Shown: positions 11,845 to 64,000, counted from the stretch's first letter. The stretch is 64,000 nucleotides of DNA from Orbicella franksi (GCA_964199315.1 OZ116700.1:5952001-6016000); one strand, 5' to 3'. Notes: generated by a model not told the origin, from the letters alone. Numbers and translations: made by a program.

Positions 11845-12567
11845 CTCATTTTCAATCATTCTTATTTGATTTTAACATTGGCTGCAGGGGTGTTATTAGC
11901 AACAACAAGCGTCGGATTTTAACACCTTATCCAAACAGCTTTTGTCTGTTAGCCCGCACGGCGGAAAGTTTTAAATGTCATAGTAATAATCTAGAAACAA
12001 TTTGGATTTAATAAATAACGTGTAAGCGAGCTCCTGGTCTAAGATGGTTTTGGAAAATGGCAGATCGAATAGCTCAATACATTACACAGGAATATGACTC
12101 AACAAAGAGTACTTGATTTGAACTTAACCACATTTCTCAGTAAAAAAAAAAATCTTTCGAAAACGTTTCCAACATAACTTACGCCTGTCCAATACGGTCG
12201 ACTTGAGCTTCGATGATTCGCGTTATCCCATAATGTGCACCAACCGCTTGATGCAAACCGTTTTTAACGAGTGCATTTTTTGTCCCTTACCCTAGTTCTT
12301 CACGGGCAGAGAAACCAAGCTGCCCGCCTTTGTTGTATATACGAAATTACACGAAGTTAATCCATCGAGTATTCCATCGAAAACTGCTTTTTCAATCGAT
12401 TTCACTCACTTTGCTTTGGTACCACATAACCTATATGGCCGAACTACAACGTCCAATATGATACTAGATTTCATCGATTTAAACTAACTTTCAGTGTTTG
12501 CTACAGAGTTAGGCCATAACTGTAACATTGTGAATGTCAGCGGTATCACAGAGTTTATAAGACATGT

Positions 12568-46448: not shown

Positions 46449-49400
46449 ATGGAGGCAAAGAGTATCCCAGAAGTAGCGTTCGAATGGCTGTGTGAATGTG
46501 GGGCCTTTGACCAGCTCAAGAAACAATGTGAATGCTACACAGCAGATTTTGCGGTATGTGTGTTTTCTTTCCATGATTTGACAGAAAATGTTTATTTGGT
46601 TGATGAGACACATTTTATCTCACTACACCGGCGTATAATATTCGATAGTTAATAGTTAACTGAGAAATTTTCTCATCGGTGAGAACATACGGGATCAGCT
46701 TCCAAAAAGCTTAACGACTTAACCTTACATGAAAATGAACATGCTTGTGGGTAAAACTCATTTTCACGTAAGCTTAATCTTACAATTAAAGCAGATAAAA
46801 GGTTTTCCACCAGGAATTGTTAAACAGGAACTCTAAATGGTCTATTCGAGCTGGCATCAAATGCACCTTTTACGGTAACTGCAGAAATTCTCCTGCACTC
46901 AGTGGCTAATTTTCATTGTCAATAGGCAGACACACACATGAATTTATAATTTACACTATGCGTCAATGAGCGAGAGTGGACAATTGGACAATTTGTTAAA
47001 TTGCAAAAAACGAATTGACGTCAGTTTTTCATGCATCTGTCCTGTTATTAACGATGAATTTTGTCATAACATTGTCAAAGAAGCAGACTTGACAGATAGT
47101 TCGTATTGTGTGATCATCCAGGTGAAGGTAGTTCTGAAAAGAACTGTTGTTGGTGACTGACGTTTCGACAACCTGAGCGGAAGTCATCTTCAGAGTGACT
47201 CTGAAGATGACTTCCGTTCAGGTTGTCAAAACGTCAGTCACCAACAATAGTTCTTTTCAGAACTACCCTCACCCGGACGATCACACAATATGAACTACTG
47301 ATACTCCTGGGTTCAAACCATTTACTATGAGACTTGACAATGTTATGATGAAATTCATTATCAGTAACAGGACAGATGCTTCTCAAACTCATTAATAATT
47401 CATAAGGTCAACTACCAACCACAAGATGTATACCACATCACGTGCATGTGTTTGGATACCCAATGAAAAACAGTATACCACTCTCCAGTGAGAGTGGTAT
47501 ATACCACTAAAATATGCACAATGACAACTTGCACAAAATCAATGAATATTTATTACTCAGAAGTAAGCTTTTACAATGTGTCTCCTTTTGTTTTCAAAGT
47601 CACACCCATTCGCGTTGCTTCTTTCATTTCTGCATCCAAAACACGCCGAAATGTCACAAACCTAAGAAAGCGAAAGAAAAAAAGTAGTATTAAAAACAAT
47701 GCACACAAGTAGTTTACGCGAACCAAATTTTATCCCAAAAAATGTAACTTACCTTTGGTCGGACATGTCCAAAGGGTTCAATGCAGCACTTCCATTTACA
47801 TCAGAAAGGTGGCACTTCAGTCTGCAAATAATCGAGTACAACTAACGGGAAGGATAACGTTCCCCAGAGGAATTGTTTACTTCTTGAATGAACTTCGACA
47901 GCCAGTAGTTGAGACTGCATGCAGGCATATCTGTAATGGCCGTTTCCAAAGTTTGCACTCTTTCTTTAAAGTCTTTCCTGGTAAAAAGACCGCCGGGTTC
48001 CAAAGTACAGGACTTCACTAATCGATGCGGTTTCCATTCCTTGAAAACCTTACACGACCATTTGGCTTTATAAGCTGTTGATTTCGGTACTGCATTATCA
48101 ACACTTTTCCTCTCATCCTCCACACTTTTCGGCTACCAAAATCTCTCGAACGACTTTCTTGCGATATATATCCTGACTAAACGACAACTTGTAAATGCTG
48201 GCAACCCCAGCAACTTTCACATCTCAATACATTAAATCGCACCATAAATGCAAATTAATTACGCCGGTAAAAAATATCATTGATATTGAAATTATCGAGG
48301 AAGGAATGTTAGACAGCAAACAATTCTAATTGGAAGTCTTTGTTTATCATTTCTTCAAGAGTGATCATGAGAAGTTATTTCCAAAACTCGTGCTTCGTGT
48401 TTCATCGGGGTATCCAAACACCTCGAAACAATAAAAGCACTTGGCCTACGGCCTCGTGCTTTCATTTGTTTCTCGGTGTTTGGATACCCCAATGAAACAC
48501 TCGCTCTCGTTTTGGAAATAGTACATGAAAAACTGACGTCAACTTGTTAAATTGTTCTAAGTATGCTGCATACACAAATTATACCTGGTGTGTTATTCTT
48601 AATTTATTACCAGTCCTTTAAGGGCACATCCTTGCTAAGGGCCCATTGAAGCCCAAAGAACAACCATCTGGGTAAATTTCAGAACATGGGAGAAAAGGGT
48701 CTTTGTCTAGTACTTACTTGCTTTACACCATGTAGATCATTGTTGTACCCTGGCACTGCACAGTGATTCAATTCTCAACTCCCATTTTCTGAAATTGTGT
48801 GGTTCCAGAAAATATCCATGCCCACTACCAGGAGGGTTAATGGAAATTCCTAAGGGGGAATTTTTAAAGGGAAGTATCAACCAAAACTGGACTTTCCTGA
48901 CTGGGAGATTCAAACTGAAAAAAAACCTTCTTTGAGAGGGGTAAGGATATTTTCTGGACCAACATATTTTGGTCTGTTATGAGAATGACTCCACAAAGGA
49001 TTGGGGTGTACTCAGTAAAACCATCAAGTTGTTGTGTTTACAGCATTAGCAAAATGGCTGTGAAATCTGCCACTCACAATCAAAAGTGTGTTCAGGTGTC
49101 CCCTCATTCCCCCACCCAATCCAAAACTTGCTGCACAGGACCTGATTGCTCAAGCTCTCTGTGGAAGTTCTTAGCCATTTTTTTCTGAGAGTGAATGTTT
49201 TCTGATTTTCTCATTTTATGCAGGAAAAGACTGTTTATAGATTTGTTTTTGGAATGGACTTGATGCATTTGCTGGATTTTAATGGTATGGCTCATAAAGC
49301 AAGTTTAACCCCTTCAATGCCCAGTTCAAAATTTACTGTGCTTGTTCAGCTCCTCCAGTTTTTGCTAAACTAGCTACCGCATTATTTGGTCTTGTAGCTA

Positions 49401-52400
49401 CACTTGGGAATCTGGTTTTAACTGAGCCTTTGAATGCCATTAATGTGTTTCAAGAGGTAAGATGGCTGATTTGTTTGGTAGATCAATGACATAAAACTGT
49501 TACCTATTATTTATAGTTGTAAAGAAAGAGGGACTCTGTTTCACCACTTTAATATTATTATAGACCAGGCTTAAAAGTTAGATCCAGAAAAAGAGTGAGT
49601 ACATCAAGATCGGTAACTAACAATTACTGGAGAATAACTGGTTTACTCTCTAGCTCTAAACTCTTGGTAAAAAACATTCAAACCGTCCTTGTGAAATTCT
49701 CACTGTAAGTATCAATAGTGCATGAAAATTGCTATTCTAAATCCTGGGGAAAGGACTCCCATATAAAAAGAACGGTGATGCTCGTCAGTAATTTTGAAAA
49801 GAATCCCTAAGAGGTACCAAGATGCTGTTCTGTGGGCGTGGCTTGAAATGTTTTTCACCCCTAAGAGGTACCAATTCTATAACAAAACATTATGTCCTGC
49901 CATATTTTTAGGGGCCAATACCCCCAAAAGATGCAGCAGAAGCTCCTGCTGTGGACCTTTTGGAACATAACTGCTTTCTTTTCTTTTTCTAGGTGTGTTT
50001 TGTTATTATTCACACCTTATCATGGATACCTGATTTGTTGTTCCCATCACAAGTTCTTGCTGTGGTCAGGTTTTTGTCAGTTTCACCACGTCAGGAGTAA
50101 GGTTTTGTTTAAAAAGTGGTTTAAGTGCCAGTATGTACTTAAAATACATAGGACAAGCGAATGGGCTGATGAAAAGGTCAATGGACTCTGTTTAGATCAA
50201 GCAATTTGGGTTGAAGGACTGGTTGGAGTTATTGCATTGTGTTCTTGTGCAACACACTTAACTTCCTTTGTCATCATCCAAAATCCAAAACCTGGGTCTT
50301 CTGGTAATTTTTAATCTGTTATGTGCAGCTGTTACAGAATTATACAACAAAAAGATATCAACAGCGGCTATCTTATAAAACAATGAAAAAGTATTAAAGC
50401 TAGTTTTGACATTTTTAAATGGCAGGTGTGTAACCAGTAAGAACCTTGCTAAATATGGTAGATCTAATCTTGTAAAGATTGTTGGCGTTGTGACTGGAAG
50501 AACAGCTGTCACCCAGTACACGTGAGTATCAACAGCCTATGGATGTATTAAGTGTCTTCCTCTGATCCTTTAGGACTGTTATTTTCTTAGTATAGTATAG
50601 TGTAGCATGGCATGATATGACATTGGTAGTTAGTTTTAACAACTTCTTCAACTTTTTGTCGTAGCCAAAGTGCAAGATTCTATTGTCCTCAATCTGAGTG
50701 CTTTGGTTCTGCTAAATATTGTTATATCAGAGTACACTTGGCTGGAAAAACTGAGAATGTTACAATTAGGTAAGTTGTATACTTGAGACCCAAAGAAAAA
50801 CTCTTGTTGAATTCTTCCATCGGCACTGTGGTTATATATGTACAATAGGTACTTTTAAAAAAGCTGAAATGCTGAAGATGCTTGATTTGTTTACTTACAG
50901 CTATTCTAGATCAGTTTTTATTACAACATTTTGTTACTCACTCTTGCATTTGTTATCTAGAAGTGATTTTGTGTGCAAATATTGTGGATCCTCTCTTATT
51001 GAAGATGTCACATGCCGTACTTTAGCAGGTAATTGCCAAATTATATTGTTGCTGTAACCTTAAAAAATTTGTTGTGTACTAAGTGCTTGGATATTGAAAG
51101 TATTTTATGTTTAGTTTCTTATTTTATATATATTGATTTGTAAATTGATTTTATATTTGCCAGATATTTTATCTTCTTTACTGATATGTTTATTTTAGAT
51201 TGCCACTGTGTGCCTCAGCGTGAGATTTTGACCATGTATTGATTATAAACAGTCACTGTCTTTTTTCTCAGATAAGTGTATTGTGCAAGTACTATCTCCC
51301 TTAACAGTACACAAGAATCTATGGATCAACACTGATGAAGGAAAATTCTACCAAGCTATTCCAATTTATGTCAGAGGTAAAAGATAACAGCCACTACTCA
51401 GTCATTAATGTAGGGACAGGGAGCTCTACCTAAAAAGAACCTAAAAGAAACTCTGTGCTTATTTCTGTCTAAGAGTCTAAAATGATTTAGTCCACACAGT
51501 CTCACAGTCTTTGTGTAACTACTAGGTTGTTAGTGATCTTGGCATCTTGTTGAGTCTCAGATTTACTCATTCATCATCCCTCAATTTGTACATGCAGTTT
51601 TATCAGAATATTGTATGTGTACAAGAGCAGCTTTTTTTCTTTGATTTATATACCTTTTTATCAGCTAATTTCTTTATTGTCTCATGTTGTCTTTTGAAAA
51701 TTATTTCCTTGGATAGATGAGCTTATCAAGGAAGTTCAGATTGGTTGCTACTTTTCATTTGTTGTTTTACCTTCCTGTGAAATCCATGATTCATCTGTCC
51801 ACTTCCTTTGTACTCCAGTGTTTGAGGTAACATGCTGTCTTGTTATCAGTGAAATTATGTCTAAATAATAGAATTATTTAATGATGAACATCTGGAGAAT
51901 GTGTGAAACTGTAGCTCTATATCTCATCTTAAACTTGGATTAGTTCAGTTATGACCAGAACTGGACTGTAACTTTGACATGAATTCATATGACTGCGAGA
52001 TAAAGCATCTTGTCCTGTTTAAAAAATTCTACATTTTGGCTGTGGAAATGGCATGTTTCACCATAATTTATTTATTTGTTGTTAGGTCCTTTGGACATTT
52101 ATATTCAAATAAGTGTTATTGTAGCAACTAATTTAGGGATATTGATAATTTTTTACAGGCAAATAACATAGAGAAGGTAAGACTTTTCTGGTCATTTATG
52201 GCATTCTGTCTTGATATTTGCCAATAGTGCCACGTCTGCATGTTTTCAATAACTTAAGATTAGAACGAGTGGCTAGATTTATTGATCTGATGATTACAGA
52301 ATATAAAGATGTGGTTGTTTAGTATCAATGAAAATTGTGAGGAAATAAAGTATGTGTTGTTGATAGCAATACAGTGCTATGTGTTGATTGTTTTGCAACA

Positions 52401-55400
52401 AACTGAAAATAAAGTAATGGCATGGCATTGTTAATTGTGTGTCGATAACTTTTAGCTCAGAAGGTGTTACAAATGTTTCTTTCTCTGACAGATAAGTCCT
52501 AGTCCATTCATAAGTTTAATGCCATCCAGTCTACCAGAGAGCATAGAGTTGCTATACAAAGGTAACATTAGGTCCAATAACATCTTACAAAAGAATACTG
52601 GTCATGAAGGTGATTTTAACTCATAATCGAATTTGGACTTGCTGTCGATGATGAATTAAGGGTCACAAAATAAAATAGCTGTAGGCTAGTAAGGGCACAA
52701 TCCCAGAATCCAACAACATAGGTCAAAAACAAGACAATCTGCTCTGCAGGCCGTTTCTGATGTAGGATATGGCTTAAAAGGGTTACTTCTCCTGCCCACC
52801 CATCCACAGATGCTGAGCAAGTATTTTAGAATCAGTCTAATACTATGAATGATCACTAAATTAAATGTAATTTAAAATGTATATTTTATTTCCATTCAGA
52901 CAGGCTGGACTCACCCTGGAGTTTTGCTGCCAGTCTAACTTACTGCTTTGGAGGTACGCTGTGTTTTAATGATCTTAAAAATGAAAACCCAGAATACCTC
53001 TGTGTAATTGCTAACTAGCCTGTTCTTCGTGATCTGGATGAAATTCAGTTCTTTGAAACACTGTCACTGTTTTTAAGAAGACTGAAATGTGTGACTGTGA
53101 AGAAAACTTCTAATTAGTTGTTTCATGTTCCTTTTTTTCCTTTTAATTGTGTGACTTCAAGTGTTCTTTGTATTCAGTTTTAGTGTGTTTCAAAATGAGT
53201 TGTTTGAGAAAATATATCAAACCCTCGATAGAGAATATGAACCATTAAGGTCAAACATTTCGAATATTGCGTTAGGACATTCCGCTGTGTGTCCCGTTGT
53301 CATTTCCCTTGGTAAACGTTTGAACTGTGAGCAAACGAAATGCTTGATATATAATCAAGATCCCTCATGTACAGGTTGTGTGACACCTCCTGGTACATTC
53401 TTTCAACTGAAAATGTTCATGCTGATGTGTCTGCTGCTGCTTCACTCCTCTGATTCCTCTGAAGATACTAAGCAAGTTCATTCAAGGAATCTTCACTTGC
53501 TTGTTATTGCCGACGATCTTCTCAGGGTTCAACGGCTGTTGTTGTATGGAGCTTCTTTTGCAGAGAGAATGCTTGTCTACTCGCCCATTAGTGAATTGTT
53601 CCCATCATTTTCTCGGGATCCTTTTGGCTCGGACACTTGTATGGTCAATGGTTAGTCATCCTCTAGGTTTTGATCTTTTCTTTATAAATTGTCTAGTAAG
53701 TAACAAGGTAAATTTATGAAGAACATGGAGGCGGAGGACTAAAACTGATGGTTGCTGGTTGCACCAACTAGTAAGTCCAACGGAAACTGTTTTCAGACTG
53801 GAAATTGATGAATTTTTTGCTTGGTTGTAATAACAAGTCAGCTCATAACAACGGGGTGGCTTAAAAGTGAGGTCATACGTTACTCCCAAGTAGATTAGTA
53901 ATATATATACACGACTGCTGCATTAAATTTGTGTCTATAACTAATCTTGTATGAAGGTAATAATATATTCTCAAATCTTCAAATAAACTATGGTGGACGA
54001 CTGAAGAGGCACGAAGAGCGAAATATATATAGAGCTACCAACAGTTAACAGTTTTTTTATCCAGAGATCCATTACCGCAGTTCTAATATCGTTTCGAAGT
54101 TATTTGAAGCCGAGTGCGTCGAGTGGGTATAGAAGGCGTATTGTCTTGTTGTTCTGGATATTCGAACACATTCCAGACCTCAGCGTGTAAACTTTCTTTA
54201 AAGTGTATGGAGGTGCCGTTGGCAAATAGTGCGACGGAATAACATCGTATTCATGGTTTTGTCTCAATGATGAGATATTTTGTCTTAAATTTTATCGCTG
54301 CAGCTGGGTGTATTCCTTTGGCAACTAATGGGATATGTGTTATTCCCAACATGGCTGTTCTGAAGAAGGACCAAAAAGAAAAACTTCAAAGTGGTATGAT
54401 AACTTGCTAAACAATGCAACTATCTGAAATGACCAGAGTGTGTTATTAGCTATAACATTTCAATTTGCTGGCCAGTTATACTGAATGAGGGTTTGATTAC
54501 TCCACACAAGTAAGGAAACATAAATACTTCATAGACAGGCTACGCCTAGCTCAGCCGCAAACACAGACGGATTTTCTTCCTCAATCCCAGGAACGAAATT
54601 ATACGTTGTGTTGCAAGACCACATGACATACATCTAGAGAAACCAGAAAAATTTTTAAAATAGAAGACAAAGTTGAAGGCCACTGTCCCCTACGGGCAAC
54701 ATTTTATACAACATAACAGTTTGTGAAGACTGTCGGTCGCAACACGAATCTTTTATACTTGATACTTTCTTACATAAAGAGGTAGTCACGGCTAATTCTG
54801 TGATGAGTACATAATTCGACCAAAGCCTCATCAATGATCATATTTACTTCATCTGTGCAAGCGTTAGAGAATGGCACCGTGACGGTCAAGGTTCCAGAGA
54901 AGTACTGGGCTTGTCAAGGTTACCAACTGTCTATACCTCTGAGCTGTAGTCTGTGGGCGTGTTCTGAACCAGCACAGAAAACGGGTCCGCACCAAGCAGT
55001 GCTTGATCCTATGTTACACCCAGGTCACATTATAAAGGTACGTTCATCTAATGCGAGTGCTCAGTAGGTTCTTCAAAATACAATTGTTTTAGTCGGTTTT
55101 GGCAATTCCTTTTTATCGATATTTCTTAACATGTGCTTCTTTGTAGGACTGTCCAACATTGCCAAGAGCATTTGTGGAGTAAGTACTGTCCCTTGTCTTT
55201 GATATTTCGTCTTTTCAAATATAATAACAATACAGCTATCTTTCCAAGTTAAGCTTTAAACGCTGTAGATAGGTCTAAGATGAGAAACGAAAATGCTGAA
55301 CGTGTCCTGGTTTTAATGTTGAATATCTTTAGCAAGTTTGACTTTGAACCCTTGCTGTGGTCATTGAGATGTGCTCTTCACTCTCAGTGTTTTGCCATAA

Positions 55401-56335
55401 CCAGGAGTATAGATGGGTACGAGTGAATTGTACGGTGAACCTGACAAAATGCTGGGGCACCAGCGATGGACTAGCATCCCATCCAAAGGGGGGTAGCAAT
55501 ACTCTATAAAGCAGTAGAGCATCCATTCCTTGGGAAATTGATTTAAAGAGTTAAAACAATCTTTCCTTATGAAATTCATTTCGTCTCTTCCGTCTTCTAC
55601 ACATTTCACACCTGTAGACAGTTTTCGCTGGTGTTAAACTTGAGTGGATCAGCTGGGAATGTCGATAATTCTGATGGATTGGTGAGCGAGGAGGTGTTAA
55701 AGAAAGCGATGGAGGACCCAGAAGATGTAGCCTCGTTATACATCAGTGATGAGGAAATGGGGCAGGTATAGCTAATCAGAAAAAAAAAAAGTAGTTTCTT
55801 TGGACGACTATGGATAAGTTTTCATAAATGGATTTCAGTCTGAGTATGGCATGGCTTGATCTTCACGTTCAATAAGAACAGGAAAATAATGCCTGCTCCG
55901 TATTTTTTTGGTGCTTGTATTTGGTGGAATTGATCTTGGCTAGCTAAGCCCTAATCATAAAGCTGTTATTTCCTTGATTGGTTTCCCCGGCGTTACTCGG
56001 AACGTAGGTACGCACCATGTCGCATGGACCACATTACCACCCCCGGCTGAGCTTTGCAAGTTCCCGTTCTTATAGCCGAAGAACTTCCCACCGGAAGCGT
56101 AAGGAAACGCCATTTTAAACCCAGCTCAGACTCAGACAGCTCATTTTCAGAACTCATTCACAGTAAAGGAAATTGGTTGTTAAACTAATAGCTGGTTTTC
56201 ACATGACGTCACTAAAATTCGAACTACAAAACTATTGATCTTCCTGAGATTTTACTTAAATGATGTATAAGAGCAGCTGAAAAACTAATATTCGTACAAA
56301 TTTTCGCTCCGAATGGGTGTTTGGTTTTGTGATAC

Positions 56336-56368
<33 letters not shown>

Positions 56369-56511
56369 CGGCATTTACGTGACGGCCTAGAGAGCTGTCA
56401 TGATGGTTAAAAACGTGTCTTATTTCGGGCAACTTGGCTATCTGAACAGCTCATGTCTTAGAAAAAGTATTATTTTAATGTTTTGGAGTTTCTCGAGGGA
56501 TAAATTTACGT

Positions 56512-56543
<32 letters not shown>

Positions 56544-59500
56544 GTTGGTTTCCGGCCGCCATGTTGGTGCCCATACGGGTGGGCACCAGCATGGCGTCTC
56601 CATACAAATCTCTATAAATGTGGGTAAAAAATTTCTCCGCATATCTCGCATAAGAAAAATTGCTGTGACCAGAATTTTGGCGAGAGTCTTTGCATATTTA
56701 CTTTCTTTCATTTCCCAGATTCTGGACTTTATCTATTGACCGGTTTTGATTTTTATTTTGATCTATTTTGAATTGCGTGACACTGAAAACCAGCAATATC
56801 TGCAGTTTATGCCAGCCTTTGAATTTGTTTCTTTAGTTCCTTCACTATGCTGGACGTCACCATACTGTTCTGACATTGGCAGCACAAGATCTTATTCAAG
56901 GTTATTATCTAGCAAACCGGCGAACCAGAGACTCTCATTCAACAGGTGGCATGGACTTCGCTGCTTCCGCACTGCAAACTCTGTAAGTTCTATTTATTGT
57001 CTCCACTTTGACAACCTACCTCAAATATTCAAAGTAAACTCCTCAGTGTCAAACTATTTTCCGAGATCGATGCATTTTTAATCAAAAGTGCTGTGATTCT
57101 TTTCACCTCCCACCCCCCCACCCCCATCCCTACCCAGTGTTTCTGTTTAGCTATCAAGACCAGTCACCATATTCAAGGTTGTTTTCGGGGAGGGAGTTAG
57201 AAAAATATTAAACAATTCCTTTGACGTTTTCGGCGATCGGCGACCATATCAGAGAATTTTAACATTTGCCACGCTCAGTTGCAATTGGCGGTGCAAGTGT
57301 TTAGTCAGCGTAACTAACGTTTTGACGATTGGCTCAGTTTATTCTTTTTCATTTGCAAGTGATATGCATGTAACCAGTTATCCGGCGTTCGCGAATAACA
57401 ACCATCAGTATCCTTCAGTTGGAGTACAATAAGCGTGTTTTACTTCCTAGGACCAGCCTGGCTATCGCTCATGCGAAGTTATCCCTCAGGTCGGAGGTAG
57501 GTGAAGCAATTAAGAAGTGCAATACAGCAGTACAGAGTGCTTTACATTACTTGTAAAAAAATTCGGACGATTTTAATGTCGGACAAAAAAGGGTCCGAAA
57601 ATAGAGCCATCCAAACGTCCGAAATATTTACAGTACAGTATACACTTTTAAATAGCTCCAAAGCCGTTAGCTTCCTTTATAGAACGAACTATAATTGAGA
57701 CACTGCAGCTTGAGATACAAAACGGCTTGATTGAAGTAACTCAATTTTTCTTATTTTCCCGTCGGTGTATTTGTAAAGCCTTGACCGGTGCAGTAAAACT
57801 GTCATTTTCGCAGATGTTGTTTCAGTCTAAAACGTGTTTTGTAGCCGTAAATTTACGTTAGTTATGTGTCACGTAATTGTCCGAAATTTTCGTCTGAAAT
57901 TTGTCTGAAGTGAGAAAAAAAGTGTCCGAAAATTCAACGTCCGAAATAAAAAGTCCGACAGTTTTTTTGCAAGTAATGTACGTAAGGAATATCCTGTCTG
58001 GTTCTAAGTGCTATTTTTGCGTGTATTGTTTTAATGACGCTGTCGGCACAATCCTATCGAATGCGATGGGCGAAGCTACGAGCTAGTGCGTTCGCTATGC
58101 GTGTGCATTTACTACCTTTCTGAATGCTTCTATAAGCTGTGGTCTGTTATCGAAATTTTGCTTGCGATAATTTGCATTTAGGCCTGGTAATCGTGTGACG
58201 TTAGCGGCGTTGAATGCGAGCTTAACGATTATTTTCCACTGAATGAATTATAGACAAAAATTAAGGCATTAATAGAAGTCAAAATTACTTCTAACAAAAA
58301 GTATTTAGTTCGTCAACAGTACGTCAGTGATGACCGAAGAGACGTTCGGAGGCGGGAAAACGTTGAACAGCAGCCGTGGAGCTTGCGCAGCAGTTGATTT
58401 CCCGAGTTAAGCTTTGAGCGTAAAAAATACATTATTCAGTCCCTATATATAAATCTGTTGTCGTAGTAATTCTGTAAGTCCTAAATATACCTAAACAGGA
58501 AACATTAATCGAGAACGGCTCAGTAACCTTTGAAGTGTGGGAAATAATTTTAACGTTTTTTCCTGCTATGTGGATCGTAGTACCGTTTAGACATTTCATT
58601 GAATTTGCATATGATTTTAACTGTAGTGAGACTGGTTTGCTGCTTCTCAATATTCTTCGACGCATTACATAACAATGACAGCCGATTCGTTTGTAGAATG
58701 ATACCTTCTATCCATCAAGTGAAATGTGTGTTACGTATTTTATAACATATTTTATTGCACAGCAGGTCATGAAGATCCTGAATTGACGTTCAGTATGCGT
58801 TGATACTTCTCTTATGCTGAATTCGAATCAGACTCATGTTCACTGAACATGAAAAAAAAAACATGTCTAAAGATTTTTTTAGCGTGGTTTGATATAATCA
58901 GCGATTTGTTTATGATTTTAAGTTGAGGGATCCGTAGTGACTACAACTGCAAATCACCGGAAAAGTTATTTGGTTGGTTTAACGTTTGCAATGAAAAAAG
59001 AAATATCAGAGACTTGATGTTCATTGGAAACACATCGGCTCTGAGAATCGAAAAAGGCAGGTAAGATTTGATGTAAACTTTCTTAATATGTCTCAGCCGA
59101 GAAATGCTAAAGTCAGATAAGTAAACAATCGATTCCAAAACTTTTGAAACCGCAAGCAAGTCAGCGTATCATTTTTTTTAAGAAGCGATCATCTCGTGAG
59201 AAAAAGCCGTCTGTTTTGACGTAGGAGTGCGAACAGTAATAAAGCGTCGTCATAACCGTTCATAAGCACAACTATTGTATTTTAAATACATGTTAAGTGG
59301 TGTGTATAATCATCTCACTTGATTTTAATTTCGGTAAAATTTGCTCTTTTTCGTTCCGCGACTTCTCAAAATGTTGAAACAAATAATAATTCGACACAGT
59401 TACGGGTCAACAAGAAAAGTATTGGGTTCTGCGTCGAGTAAAATTCAGAGGTTTACTTGTTAAGCGATGCAGTTTACGAAAGTGATCTCAGTCTCCCATT

Positions 59501-62500
59501 AAGACGAAGAATACACTCGATAAATAATCGTTTTTCAGCTGAATTATAATAAAACTGGATCGTGCTGTAGTTAAAAGTAAAGTGTCCGACTTACCAGGAG
59601 CTAGCCTGGCACTACCAAAAAGTACTATTTTTAAGTTATTATTACAAGAAAATGGCCACTTTTTCGAACGAGTTATTATTAGCACTTTTCCTGTAAACTT
59701 TGTTTAGGTTTCGTTTTCGCATATTGTTCACTTTTGATATGATGCGGGATTAACGTCTAATATTTTAGAATTACAAAATGATCAGTAGGTATTGTTAAAA
59801 ACTGCTAAATTTAAAATTTCTTTTGTTGGAAGTAACTTTTTACCTAACGGTCACCTGTCTTTGGTCCCAATAATAGTTGTTTTTTCACACGAATTACAAT
59901 TTAAATATGTTTTGGAAAAAGAGTCCTCGCATTTTCACTAACTACCAAGTTAAATCGAGAAAGCTTCCCTGTATAGCGTTCGAAGAGGGCGAACCATGAA
60001 GGAAATAACCATTCGAAAAGCGGTGGCGACCGACTTTGCAGCCATTCTGGAGATGTCAGAGGGGATTTACAGCGGCCATGATTACTTCCCGTGTATTTTC
60101 CACCAGTGGCTGGCCAAACCAAACCGCACGATTTTTGTTGCTCAGTATGGAGACAAACTCGTTGGTTTGAGAGCAGTTCACATCGTGGACGAAGGCAAGA
60201 CGTTTATCAGTCAAGGCTTGCGAATTCACCCCAGGTTCCGTGGATTGGGGTTAAGTACTCGGTTGATCGACGCCATACATCAGCACATAAGACGGGAATA
60301 TCCCAAGGTTTGCCGAGAACGTTTCACGACCAAGTCCGACAACATTGAACGACTTGCCATTCAGAAAAAATACGGTGACACCGCCTTGTGTGAGCGAGAT
60401 ATTTTTGCCTATTACGTCAACAGGGAAAGCCTGAAACCGCATCATCTGGAAGAGGTGGCGACCAATTTTGACGTGAAGGTCAAACCCTGTACAAGAATGT
60501 TTGTTTACAATTCTATTCTGGACGATTCAGTAGCAAACATGTTTCCTGGTCGTACGATCATCATCGACTGGGAACCTTTCGAAGCTCTCCGATCCAATAT
60601 CGATTGCATTTTTGAAGACGGCGATTGCGTCTTCTCGGACCGAGATGCAGACGACTGCTCCAATGGTCAGCTACCGAAGTCATTCGCGCATGGTCGGCGC
60701 TCGCCCCGAGTGCAGCACATGCATTGGGTGGCGTCCATTTACACAGAAGATCCAGTCATGTTCCAAGTGCATGTTGTTCAACAGCTGAGGAGCGCATGTC
60801 AGCAAGTGGAAGGTGATTTCATCTTCTCCACTTTTCACAAAGAGCGTCACACCAAATGGGGCAAGAAGCTTTTAGAAGAGAAGATCGGAATGAAACCTGT
60901 GGAATTCTTCCGTGATTTTGGACTGATGATGTTTGAACGAACATTTAAATGACTTGTGATCTGTAATAATTTAATTGTGCTCTTACTGAAATATTATTAG
61001 TAAAGCAATTGACTGAAGTTAGCAATGCATGTGCTAAATCTTGTTGACACTCAAATAAAGTTTATTTATGTATGTCATGTATGTATATTACAGAAGTTAT
61101 TACTTCCTTTCTCTTTTTTAAGGAGTGATGTATTTTGTTATCTTCTGAAATACAAATAATAAACTTGTCGTCCAATGACAATCATTTTCGCAATGTTCTA
61201 AAAAAGTGTTAAGTTATTCCCGGGCTTAGCGACCAAAATGCCGAATTTTAACCACTGAAAGCTGTTTTTCTTTTTATTGAAAGGTTTTGGAAGAAGATGC
61301 TGTTGTAGCCATCGTATTTTACGAAGACTCAGTAAAATGGAAATATGGTAATAATGCAAACTTCGGCTGGGCTGTATGACCCCCCTTCTCTCACCTCATC
61401 GGTTGTAGAATGTTGGAAATGTCAAATTATTTCTTTACTCATCTACTTATATCGATCTACTATGCTGCTCATTAAGTAGAATACCATTTAGTAAGCTACT
61501 CATATCGACTAGGGTTCGACTCAATCTTTCAGACCTAACTATGGGGGGCCAATCGTTAAGATTTCACAGATTCCAACACAACAATTTTTTTTCCAGGAGA
61601 AGCTTGATATGCCAGGTTTTGCGTTTATTTCCTTCGATGAACGCCAAAGCATTGAGATGAAGACTCGTTTCTTACATTAGTAATTTTACCTGTCAATAGG
61701 CTTTTCGTCTCTTGGTCCTGTTGATCCTCCTTCGCCCGGTGAAGATGCTTCAGAATTTTTTGGTGCAAAGGTTAGTCTTCGTTACCTCCCTAAGCACTGG
61801 AGCGACATACGCTTCAGTAATTAAATAATCCGTCCATCCCTACCAAGGGGCGTTTTTGAAAATGCGCAGTGACCTCTTTATTGTTAAAAAGGATGAGGAA
61901 TTAGTTTTGCCAAAAGAGTTCTTTACCTTTTCTTCACTTCAGCATGCACTTTTATTGTCCTCTTAAGAACGTTCCTGAAGGGGGGCGGGTGGGGGTGGTG
62001 TTCAAATCCTATTTTCCAGCCCAGATTTTGCTCAAAAAATCCCATTTCACGGCCAATTTTTTCCCAAAATTCATTCCCGTTCTCAATTTTTTGTTTGTGA
62101 TTCCCAGTCCTAGTGGCCTAAATCCGATTTTCCCAGTGATCAAACAGACAAATTCCAGTTTCCATTTTACCACCCAGTGAGGCCCCACCAAAAGACCCGA
62201 GAGGTAATTTACGGGACAAACGGGTCTGTAGGCGAGGAAACCTAAAACTAGACTAAATGAAGGGGACTTCAATTTCAGGGGACCGGAAGGGAGACGGGGA
62301 ACCCTACAGCTACAGGTAATTCTCCTTCCGCCCGCCCGCCTGCAAGGGTTCAACTTGATTAACTTTGCGTATTTGGATTACAATATAATCCACATGTATG
62401 TGAGTCAACTTCGGTCAATTTTGTAGTTGACTGTAATGCAAATAAAAGCTAACCGTGGAAAGGGCTATTCTGTCACGCTGGCTGCTAAACTAGACAGATT

Positions 62501-62921
62501 CATTTGCACAATAGCCTTATAACTAGACGCTTTTGGGGCTCAAAAGATTGCGTGACGAGCCCAAAAAGGATGTGCTTTGGAGGCTAGCCAAGCACTCAAC
62601 GTTCATTCATCTATTGGACGTTGGGATTGTTTCCAGTTCTTTTCGCCCTTGACGGACTCGAGAAAGCCGCGGAAATCGAGCCTACCTTGAAGGGGGATCC
62701 GACGTTCCGACCAAATTTCCAGACGATGTGATCGGGGAGCAATTAGATTTTGTGAGAGTGATCTTTACATTTCAAAACTGGTGTCTATTTTTGAAATTTG
62801 TTCTGCTATTTTCCAGAATGATTGCAGGATGCAACAAATCCATGGTAGAATTCGACGTTTCTGCTCAAGTTTTAAAGATGGTTATTCAACTTCCTTCGTA
62901 GCGTTTCCACACGAGGAGTAA
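46449..62921 (+). CDS. MCMDC2: MCM domain-containing protein 2 (meiotic, catalytically degenerate MCM paralog), 702 aa
   Basis: 22 exons: 46449-46553, 49224-49284, 49398-49456, 49993-50096, 50426-50521, 50665-50769, 50961-51028, 51272-51376, 51717-51826, 52159-52176, 52492-52561, 52900-52953, 53375-53650, 54304-54393, 54862-55037, 55147-55178, 55618-55765, 56837-56982, 57451-57496, 61284-61347, 61700-61770, 62817-62921 (2109 bp total, frame intact). Recognisable blocks: VYRF, TLGNLVLTEP, ARFYCPQSEC..YIRVH, CKYC, TPPGTF, AGCIPLATNGICVI, GYYLANRRTR, AHAKLSLR, VLEEDA. Confidence 0.9.
47097..47326. mobile_element. Penelope-like retroelement terminus as an inverted pair carrying minimal hammerhead ribozyme motifs
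   Basis: 100-bp arms (47097-47196 and 47198-47297) around a single G; CTGAAGA...GTCGAAACGTC core; AGACTTGACA duplicated on both flanks (47085-47094, 47330-47339); inserted inside another repeat. Confidence 0.7.
47465..48525 (-). mobile_element. Degenerate Crypton-type (tyrosine recombinase, DUF3504-associated) element in MCMDC2 intron 1
   Basis: Translation NAVPKSTAYKAKWSCKVFKEW...LNYWLSKFIQEV..SGERYPSR*LYSIICRLKCHL resembles the N-terminal region of Crypton/ZMYM-type proteins. In-frame stop, then a GTAAG donor after 47753. Hairpins at both ends (about 47472-47500 and 48376-48520). Confidence 0.65.
56189..56797. mobile_element. Non-autonomous DNA element with (A)TAGCTGGTTTTCA termini
   Basis: ATAGCTGGTTTTCACATGACGTCAC / GCGTGACACTGAAAACCAGCAAT; internal hairpin GCCATGTTGGTGCCCA..TGGGCACCAGCATGGC; CpG retained, so probably young. 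Confidence 0.65.
57543..57980. mobile_element. DNA element with TACATTACTTG TIRs and TTCGGAC/GTCCGAA subterminal repeats
   Basis: TACATTACTTGTAAAAAAA / TTTTTTTGCAAGTAATGTA; multiple (T)TCGGAC at the left end and GTCCGA at the right end; a similar array at about 20318-20400. Confidence 0.65.
59996..60952 (+). CDS. NAT16: GNAT N-acetyltransferase, NAT16 / histidine N-acetyltransferase-like, 318 aa, nested in MCMDC2 intron 19
   Basis: Uninterrupted 957-bp ORF. SEGIYSGHDYFP..FHQWL..PNRTIFVA..VDEGKT..QGLRIHPRFRGLGLS includes the acetyl-CoA-binding motif A and matches the NAT16 family pattern. AATAAA at 61054-61059 with a GT-rich downstream element. Possible upstream coding exon at 59017-59060. 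Confidence 0.88.
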   Translation: MKEITIRKAVATDFAAILEMSEGIYSGHDYFPCIFHQWLAKPNRTIFVAQYGDKLVGLRAVHIVDEGKTFISQGLRIHPRFRGLGLSTRLIDAIHQHIRREYPKVCRERFTTKSDNIERLAIQKKYGDTALCERDIFAYYVNRESLKPHHLEEVATNFDVKVKPCTRMFVYNSILDDSVANMFPGRTIIIDWEPFEALRSNIDCIFEDGDCVFSDRDADDCSNGQLPKSFAHGRRSPRVQHMHWVASIYTEDPVMFQVHVVQQLRSACQQVEGDFIFSTFHKERHTKWGKKLLEEKIGMKPVEFFRDFGLMMFERTFK

Positions 62922-63157
62922 AAAAATAAACGAAGCCGTTTCGGACTCGGATGATTCGGTCGCGAAATAAAGTATGGCGGAAATTTATATAAGAATTGTA
63001 CGATGTTAAATATTTCGAATGTGTACGATTACATGTAAATCCTATGAATTATTTGAGGAAGAATTATTTTTATGTACAGGCGGCAAAGAATAAATAAAGT
63101 TGTGCCGTTCAACGTTTCGATTTGTTCTGTGTTTTTCTGAAGTCTTATACAAGGAAA

Positions 63158-63393: not shown

Positions 63394-63617
63394 CGAAGGA
63401 AAAGGTTTGAAGTGTACATTGCTGAGGTGACCTGGCACTAGGCACTAAGGCAGTAGTTTATTTCCGCTGGCCATTTTGCGGTGCGCTGTGTGTCGTCATA
63501 GCAACGATTATGTATCGCAATCGAAGTCCCTTATTAGCGCGTTTGTTCACGGCAGGCAGATGTTTTGAGATAAAAAGTTATCGCATTTAGATACAAAAGT
63601 CGGCAATTTTTGCCGAA

Positions 63618-63696
63618 ATGGCTGAGGTAATGTATGGACTGGTATCAGAAGCGAGGAAAAATCGGTTTTCAGCGATACCGAAGCTTACGGAAGAAG
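63618..63696 (+). CDS. Probable first coding exon of an unidentified gene continuing beyond the right edge
   Basis: ATG in good context (GAAATGG), open frame MAEVMYGLVSEARKNRFSAIPKLTEE, strong donor G|GTAAGT, CpG-rich upstream region with a YY1-like GCCATTTTG. Product not recognised. Confidence 0.4.
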
Positions 63697-64000
63697 GTAA
63701 GTTAATTGAGAAACCAAGGACTCCCATAATCGAGTCCTTGTCTGTTGCCTTTTCTGCCTTTATGTATGTTGCTTTGCTGAGTTTCGTTTTGAGTGTATTA
63801 CCATAATTTGATGTTGCAGATATCGTGAATGTATGGGACAATGTGTCGAAATTCATCGAAAGACAAATGGCGCTTCAAAAGGTTAGGAAATTCAGTGTTC
63901 CAAAATTTCACTTCACGCACGTGCAATGGAATGTTTCTTGTACCGCGAGCTTCGCGCGTTTATTGAAATCTCGAGAAAGTTTTATAATCACTACTGCAGA

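Follow-up and report, generated by a model that had tools for sequence, protein, structure and literature searches.

When one gene lies inside an intron of another and is read from the same strand, the question arises whether it is a gene of its own, how it came to be there, and whether its signals interfere with those of its host. This question is raised by a stretch of 64,000 nucleotides from the coral Orbicella franksi (GCA_964199315.1 OZ116700.1:5952001-6016000; hereafter the window, with all positions counted from its first letter), in which a first-pass annotation made from the sequence alone had placed an acetyltransferase gene of the GNAT type, similar to NAT16/HisAT, in an intron of the meiotic gene MCMDC2. 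The annotation had further proposed that this gene may be a retrogene-like insertion whose expression is mutually exclusive with that of MCMDC2, or that its poly(A) signal may act as an off-switch for MCMDC2. The explanation that, taken as a whole, is considered quite probable here is that of an old host/nested pair, in which a single-coding-exon HisAT/NAT16-type gene would reside in MCMDC2 intron 19 as an independent unit on the same strand, and the host would be spliced across it.

The host gene is MCMDC2, and its exons 20-22 encode the end of the MCM-lid and the conserved C-terminus. Its 5' and central part (exons 1-19, plus strand) was located at 46449-57496 by tblastn of named orthologs and splice-site search; proteins from Branchiostoma, Patiria, Liolophura, Corticium, and Montipora, which represent five phyla, tile this stretch, and several of the orthologs go on into 61284-61347, 61700-61770, and 62817-62918. 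The largest upstream exon (53320-53652), compared with 1.8 billion representative proteins, matches proteins that are named MCMDC2 by their sources and that come from Desmophyllum, Montipora, Branchiostoma, Patiria, Liolophura, Ptychodera, Saccoglossus, and the sponge Corticium; exon 13 retrieves MCMDC2 proteins from six phyla. The exon blocks are conserved with three other corals, and the coral host is colinear with the orthologs of this meiotic MCM-domain protein (described in mouse, PMC5070785) from sponge to amphioxus. Coral orthologs carry the MCMDC2_N, MCM, and MCM_lid domains of the family (MCMDC2_N, PF26063, as precomputed on the Desmophyllum and Montipora proteins; PF00493 and PF17855 on the product of the mRNA contig L025), and the Walker region is degenerate (LHLLVIADD). 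A Pfam MCM (PF00493) search of the coral's own genome gave no match within the window, because the MCM domain of MCMDC2 is too divergent. In RefSeq, MCMDC2 is a single protein of 682 amino acids (aa) in Montipora foliosa and two proteins in Montipora capricornis (P0037/P0068; 414 and 293 aa), the latter being probably a split gene model.

Exact exon boundaries are given for the 3' exons of MCMDC2 only, all of them on the plus strand. Exon 18 (56837-56982, from splice-site search) is followed by exon 19 (57451-57496), which ends in ...AHAKLSLRSE and continues into the donor GTAGGT. Intron 19 (57497-61283) is a GT..AG intron of 3787 nt that contains the nested gene, and exon 20 (61284-61347), which begins after ...TGAAAG, reads VLEEDAVVAIVFYEDSVKWKYG and completes the MCM-lid helix. 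Exon 21 (61700-61770) was placed by ortholog homology, splice-site search, and junction reads; exon 22 (62817-62921) ends in ...FPHEE, with the TAA at 62919-62921 and an AATAAA at 62925-62930. The in-frame join of exon 19 (end 57496) to exon 20 (start 61284), as claimed in the first-pass annotation, holds: it is a phase 0 join over a GT..AG intron and is supported by orthologs. The C-terminus of Montipora foliosa RefSeq MCMDC2 runs ...AHAKLALHPE, VFEEDAVAAIALYEHSFKWKYG, YSGLGVLDHPRLGSDASEFFGPK, and NETRMREFQGRIQRFCSTF...FHEE, colinear with window exons 19-22, and the sponge Corticium protein reads uninterruptedly across the same join (AHAKLHLRNEVLEEDAV). The lid motif, AHAKLxLRxE from exon 19 and VxEEDAV from exon 20, is likewise continuous in the sponge, Montipora, and Stylophora proteins. 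With orthologs tiling both sides of the intron, the same-strand nesting of a GNAT gene upstream of three further coding exons is also confirmed; its coding sequence, candidate promoter, and poly(A) signal all lie within 57497-61283. In other phyla, the MCMDC2 region yielded no nested gene, but the introns of these genes were not looked at.

Host mRNA that is spliced from exon 19 to exon 20 is seen in three other corals. Two Logan mRNA contigs (L025/L026, from SRR22097852 and SRR22097825) align at 99-100% with the genomic locus L015 of a Montipora-like acroporid, in ten blocks that equal exons 13-22, and their junction from 8138 to 12527 skips a 4.4-kb intron that bears the GNAT open reading frame (ORF; 10001-10963 of L015). 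The exon 19/20 join is also crossed by proteins derived from transcripts of two other corals (P0078 and P0076; P0073); splicing over the GNAT itself is shown in the one coral with matching genomic DNA. For O. franksi, raw reads were checked, and 10 reads from X22, a stranded poly(A) library, were placed on the window (depth ~1x). They lie on MCMDC2 exons 19, 20, 21, and 22, with the first mate always on the minus strand, which fits plus-strand RNA in a standard stranded library, and four of them carry the GT..AG junction from 61347 to 61700 (exon 20 to exon 21). Reads of another library (X24) lie on repeats only. During transcription of MCMDC2, the polymerase would pass through the nested gene, and the 3.8-kb intron would be spliced out to yield an mRNA for the full-length protein.

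The product of the nested gene is a HisAT/NAT16-type double-GNAT enzyme. Its coding sequence (59996-60952, plus strand) is a single intact coding exon of 318 aa from ATG to TGA, with a G+C content of 0.45-0.49 next to 0.33-0.37 in the neighbouring DNA. Pfam recognizes Acetyltransf_1 at residues 28-104 (4.6e-09) and Hisat_C (PF24066) at residues 172-281 (1.6e-20), and residues 80-87 (RFRGLGLS) fit the acetyl-CoA-binding R/Q-x-x-G-x-G/A motif, of which G83 is invariant and G85 is present in 23 of the 25 orthogroup members. The nearest PDB matches are human NAT16 chains (E 7e-21). An AlphaFold (AF2) model derived from 23 homologs (predicted local distance difference test, pLDDT, 89; predicted template modelling score, pTM, 0.88) superposes over its full length (~334 columns) on the histidine-bound HisAT crystals 9en3, 9emd, and 9emp with template modelling (TM) scores of 0.84-0.85, the remaining double-GNAT proteins reaching ≤0.60. 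In human HisAT, histidine is bound by Tyr74, Tyr79, Trp246, the Gly123-Leu124 bulge, and Phe63 (PMC12219266). Mapped via a HMMER alignment to 9emo (numbering offset 41), human F63, Y74, Y79, G123, L124, and W246 correspond to coral F14, Y25, Y30, G74, L75, and W192. Across the 25 members of the orthogroup, Y25, Y30, L75, and W192 do not vary, and the contact residues as a group are invariant or almost so. The ORF, its Pfam domains, the predicted fold, and the contact residues together bear out the earlier description of an intact, NAT16/HisAT-like GNAT ORF of this length.

The predicted substrate of the coral enzyme is most likely free histidine or a close analogue, of which the alpha-amino group would be acetylated using acetyl-CoA. 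Like human and fish HisAT (NAT16; PDB 9emd/9emo/9en3, PMC12219266), the coral protein combines an active N-terminal GNAT domain with a Hisat_C domain that makes up a second GNAT-like half, and the RxxGxG acetyl-CoA motif, Y74, Y79, W246, the beta-bulge G123-L124, and F63 are all kept. The two differ in that the structural alignment gives 22% identity only, the coral N-terminus is shorter, and the coral gene has a single coding exon and another genomic context, human NAT16 lying between MOGAT3 and VGF. Moreover, the coral genome has 11 more family matches, and the copies that were analysed have altered beta-bulge residues.

A single coding exon and a G+C content above that of the surrounding intron are also features that a recent retrocopy, a decaying relic, or a functionless chance ORF may have, but such an origin deserves hardly any credence. 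Among five corals, the pairwise ratio of nonsynonymous to synonymous substitution (dN/dS) of the ORF is 0.06-0.10, with dS up to saturation; orthologs are found in many stony corals at 74-94% identity, in sea anemones at 56-58%, and in other non-scleractinian lineages at 51-57%. The active-site residues are invariant, and the position in the intron is common to at least five coral genomes. The nested gene is under strong purifying selection, as the first-pass annotation would require of a genuine gene, and it is functional and no relic. Chance ORF, recent retrocopy, and pseudogene were each rejected on the ortholog identities, the dN/dS values, the shared position, and the invariant active site.

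The relatives of the nested gene provide indications of where it came from. In the coral's own genome, 12 family matches were found, all of them colinear without introns and 10 without an internal stop; seven of the 12 are on chromosome 15, with six clustered at 6.03-6.13 Mb. This cluster (C15:6033132-6135659) consists of six single-exon HisAT-like paralogs, one with stops, around a TTC21 ortholog. In a maximum-likelihood tree, the nested copy and its coral orthologs are sister to an anemone-containing clade (orthogroup support 100/100), and every other own-genome copy included belongs to a second clade; the nested gene is therefore the sole coral member of its orthogroup. In the paralog clade, the beta-bulge residues G74 and L75 are replaced, as is often the substrate-stacking W192, a pattern that suggests a changed substrate.

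The ortholog of Actinia and Nematostella is flanked on one side by a RhoBTB-like gene and on the other by a TTC21-like gene in convergent (tail-to-tail) orientation, and a TTC21-like neighbour is also present in a third lineage (L018). When the coral's own genome was searched, a RhoBTB-like ORF from Actinia and one TTC21 ORF produced a weak match or nothing; with a better-conserved TTC21 exon as the query, the TTC21 ortholog of the window genome was located on chromosome 15 at 6041453-6052608, within the paralog cluster, where one paralog (L005) lies 7.4 kb past its 3' end. Because the anemone orthologs and the coral paralog cluster both adjoin TTC21, the family likely resided originally in the TTC21 neighbourhood, the place of the nested gene in the MCMDC2 intron being derived. 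As the single coral ortholog of the anemone gene beside the TTC21-like gene, the nested gene would have moved from the TTC21 family locus to the MCMDC2 intron before the acroporid/Desmophyllum split and stayed there since.

The age of the arrangement follows from its distribution. Exon 19 upstream and exons 20-22 downstream of the GNAT, all on the same strand, are found in the window, in Desmophyllum pertusum (L012), in L014, and in the Montipora-like acroporid (L015/L016), and a further locus (L019) is colinear from inside the intron through exon 22. The Acroporidae belong to the Complexa and the Caryophylliidae to the Robusta in the accepted coral phylogeny. As the nesting is present in an acroporid as well as in Desmophyllum, the move predates the split between them, i.e., the deepest split of most living Scleractinia. 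The comparison of the orthologous intron that had been proposed for dating the insertion thus gave an answer on the coral side, the anemone orthologs being found beside a TTC21-like gene instead.

The notion of a retrogene-like insertion could be upheld in part. Relocation, as indicated by the TTC21 neighbours, and great age stand; retroposition cannot be demonstrated, as the whole family has a single coding exon. Introns lost relative to a parent were not found, all 12 genome matches being colinear and the anemone orthologs having a single coding exon, and retroposition cannot be argued from intron loss because the source family is itself intronless. As for other marks of a retrocopy, no A-run follows the poly(A) signal as read in the sequence, and target-site duplications were not searched for; neither a poly(A) tract nor target-site duplications are expected to survive over an insertion this old.

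Candidate signals for independent expression of the nested gene lie on both sides of the ORF. A proximal upstream module (59775-59891, plus strand) consists of AAAAYGAT at 59775, GTCACCTGT with an E-box core at 59850, TAATAGT at 59871, and TTCACACG at 59884. Seven coral sequences have this module 100-225 nt ahead of the ATG, its motifs in constant order and at constant distances (AAAAYGAT, then GTCACCTGT, TWATAGT 20-21 nt on, and TTCRCACG another 13 nt on), and it is a candidate GNAT core promoter. Its motifs were not found upstream of the anemone orthologs. Further away, ~700-800 nt upstream of the ATG, lies a distal conserved non-coding element (59188-59305, plus strand; core CGTGAGAAA..CCGTCTGTT..AACAAAG..ATTGT), a candidate distal promoter, enhancer, or 5' non-coding exon. 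Of the six other coral loci that were searched, five, the acroporid L015 among them, have this element at the corresponding position, and L021 gave no match. It has no conserved RNA fold (-2.6 kcal/mol), and Rfam gave no match over 57-64 kb. Apart from the conserved motifs, the intron around them is unalignable with that of the acroporid. Downstream, the AATAAA that had been noted at 61054 and its GT-rich element are both present: the candidate poly(A) site (61054-61090, plus strand) comprises AATAAA at 61054-61059, 102 nt past the stop codon, and a GT/T-rich stretch, and every coral ortholog examined has an AATAAA or ATTAAA 100-250 nt after its stop.

Contigs from at least 12 RNA runs of several studies, some of them poly(A)-selected, contain parts of the GNAT. 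In X4, a poly(A) RNA-seq sample, contigs cover 59192-59360, 59937-60148, and 60258-60390, none of them linking the distal element and the ORF. With its conserved upstream elements and poly(A) signal, the nested GNAT is most likely an independent transcription unit that would use this putative promoter and poly(A) site.

An account in which there is no separate gene would have the GNAT ORF expressed from the MCMDC2 promoter only, as an alternative terminal exon or from a retained-intron (bicistronic) RNA. The ORF is on the host strand, a read-through transcript exists, and in the Desmophyllum annotation the GNAT N-terminus is fused to MCMDC2 (KAJ7363409.1, 745 aa), with the Hisat_C half fused to MCMDC2 exons 20-22 (199 aa). 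These fused gene models are accounted for, however, by the Desmophyllum pertusum assembly GCA_029204205.1, in which a deletion of 1 bp (L012 ~9925, equal to window 60462) splits the ORF. Upstream of the ATG, the frame is open for 14 codons only, and splicing of exon 19 to the sole nearby AG (59948-49) would enter a different frame with a TAG after 8 codons; because of these two features, a fusion or an alternative terminal exon is unlikely. In addition, the upstream motif module is conserved, the anemone orthologs function outside MCMDC2, and the X22 reads fall on the host and none on the ORF. Expression from the MCMDC2 promoter only is hence regarded as improbable. An MCMDC2-GNAT fusion protein was rejected outright on the reading frames, the stops, and the Desmophyllum deletion.

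Several observations weigh against the account of an old, independently transcribed nested gene. In X22, the GNAT is without reads, as is intron 19 beyond its first ~500 nt, which include a transposon-like element described below. The junction from 57496 to 61284, for which the first-pass annotation had called, is matched by spliced contigs in the three relatives, and in the window species, with its 10 X22 reads at ~1x, it is not listed, the junction from 61347 to 61700 alone being seen. The RNA library X1 covers introns too and may contain DNA or pre-mRNA. Neither reads nor contigs gave a start, a strand, or a 3' end for the nested gene, features that Logan contigs are unable to show. The conserved upstream motifs could serve MCMDC2, e.g., as intronic regulatory elements, instead of the GNAT. 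The Desmophyllum deletion could be an assembly error or a real, recent frameshift or loss. Lastly, the ortholog in L017 has different flanks, and the ancestral position and the direction of the relocation were derived by parsimony from few lineages.

Whether the nested gene affects its host is a further matter. MCMDC2 might be truncated after exon 19, either because the nested gene is being transcribed or because MCMDC2 transcripts end at its poly(A) site, and the product would then be without the lid end and the C-terminus. The pair would in this case switch between a somatic state, with the GNAT on, and a meiotic one, with full-length MCMDC2. A canonical AATAAA does lie on the host strand within the intron, and nested-gene-dependent premature polyadenylation of the host is known in mammals (PMC11694760, citing Wood 2008 and Cowley 2012). 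In a close relative, the Logan transcript-derived protein P0071 has exons 13-19 spliced, and its last 56 codons are intron 19 sequence. It occurs alongside the canonical P0078 and P0076, with which it shares a protein cluster (≥90% identity), and represents either pre-mRNA that is partly processed or a real truncated isoform. The poly(A) samples also differ, X22 having host exons and no GNAT, and X4 having pieces of the GNAT and no exon 20, but at depths of ~1x this contrast cannot measure mutual exclusivity. No molecule ending near 61075 was seen, read-through contigs have the look of partly processed pre-mRNA with a long, slowly removed intron, and canonical splicing occurs in three coral lineages. 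Truncation of the host by its nested gene is thus thought unlikely. Slightly less probable again is the stronger proposal that same-strand nesting has been kept because it is functional, MCMDC2 being toggled, by use of the nested promoter or poly(A) site, between a truncated product ending within intron 19 and the meiotic full-length one. If true, a meiosis gene would be under the control of an intronic-polyadenylation switch that is ancient and common to the stony corals, and P0071 would be the product of this switch. Independent transcription of the nested gene with the host spliced across it remains the preferred reading.

Other elements are also present in the MCMDC2 introns and next to the gene. 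An element resembling a miniature inverted-repeat transposable element (MITE) occupies 57543-57980 (438 bp; no strand assigned) and has 19-nt terminal inverted repeats (TACATTACTTGTAAAAAAA) and inner GTCCGAAA-rich repeats; it starts 47 nt past the exon 19 donor and is a passenger in intron 19. RNA contigs and reads on it have loose ends and opposite-strand joints, indicating that many related copies are transcribed elsewhere. In MCMDC2 intron 21, a stretch of ~32 nt (62653-62684; GACGGACTCGAGAAAGCCGCGGAAATCGAGCC) has an RNA depth of ~1200 in X1 and ~430 in X4 and is also covered in X24. It has loose ends to its left and right and a fixed C>G at 62668, Rfam gave no match, and an abundant RNA or a repeat elsewhere seems to contain the same fragment. 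A CCDC81-like gene starts ~500 nt past the MCMDC2 stop on the same strand (window 63419-64000), with HU-CCDC81 domains in the orthologous loci, and Desmophyllum, L014, and the acroporid L015 share the order MCMDC2-(GNAT)-CCDC81.

Host/nested pairs of either orientation are common: in a 2024 survey of mouse and human they involve more than one-tenth of genes, and same and opposite orientations are 'broadly similar' in frequency (PMC11694760). The premise that nested genes are mostly antisense, from which the first-pass annotation had started, is accordingly a weak one. As in the mammalian pairs Mcts2/H13 and Nap1l5/Herc3 (PMC11694760, PMC3192792), the coral nested gene is small, has a single coding exon, and carries promoter-like and poly(A) signals inside an intron of a host whose mRNA is spliced over it, and there is a similar potential for transcriptional interference or premature host polyadenylation. 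The coral pair differs in that its genes are on the same strand, and no imprinting or regulated polyadenylation is evident in it. Unlike for those mammalian retrogenes, retroposition cannot be deduced for the coral gene, whose source family is intronless, and the arrangement is very old. The coral pair is therefore a clean, well-dated instance of a known arrangement and no new kind, and it leaves current concepts unchanged.

Nonetheless, the locus has consequences for the corals and for the enzyme family. Coral gene models can be corrected, namely, the Desmophyllum KAJ7363409.1 fusion and the split of MCMDC2 in Montipora capricornis. The pair also provides a dated case of a gene that would have been relocated into a host intron and that has been on the same strand since before the acroporid/Desmophyllum split, and it lends itself to asking how host transcription gets past a poly(A) signal inside the gene. 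With one coral paralog keeping the histidine-binding site of human HisAT, the synthesis of N-acetylhistidine in cnidarians becomes directly testable.

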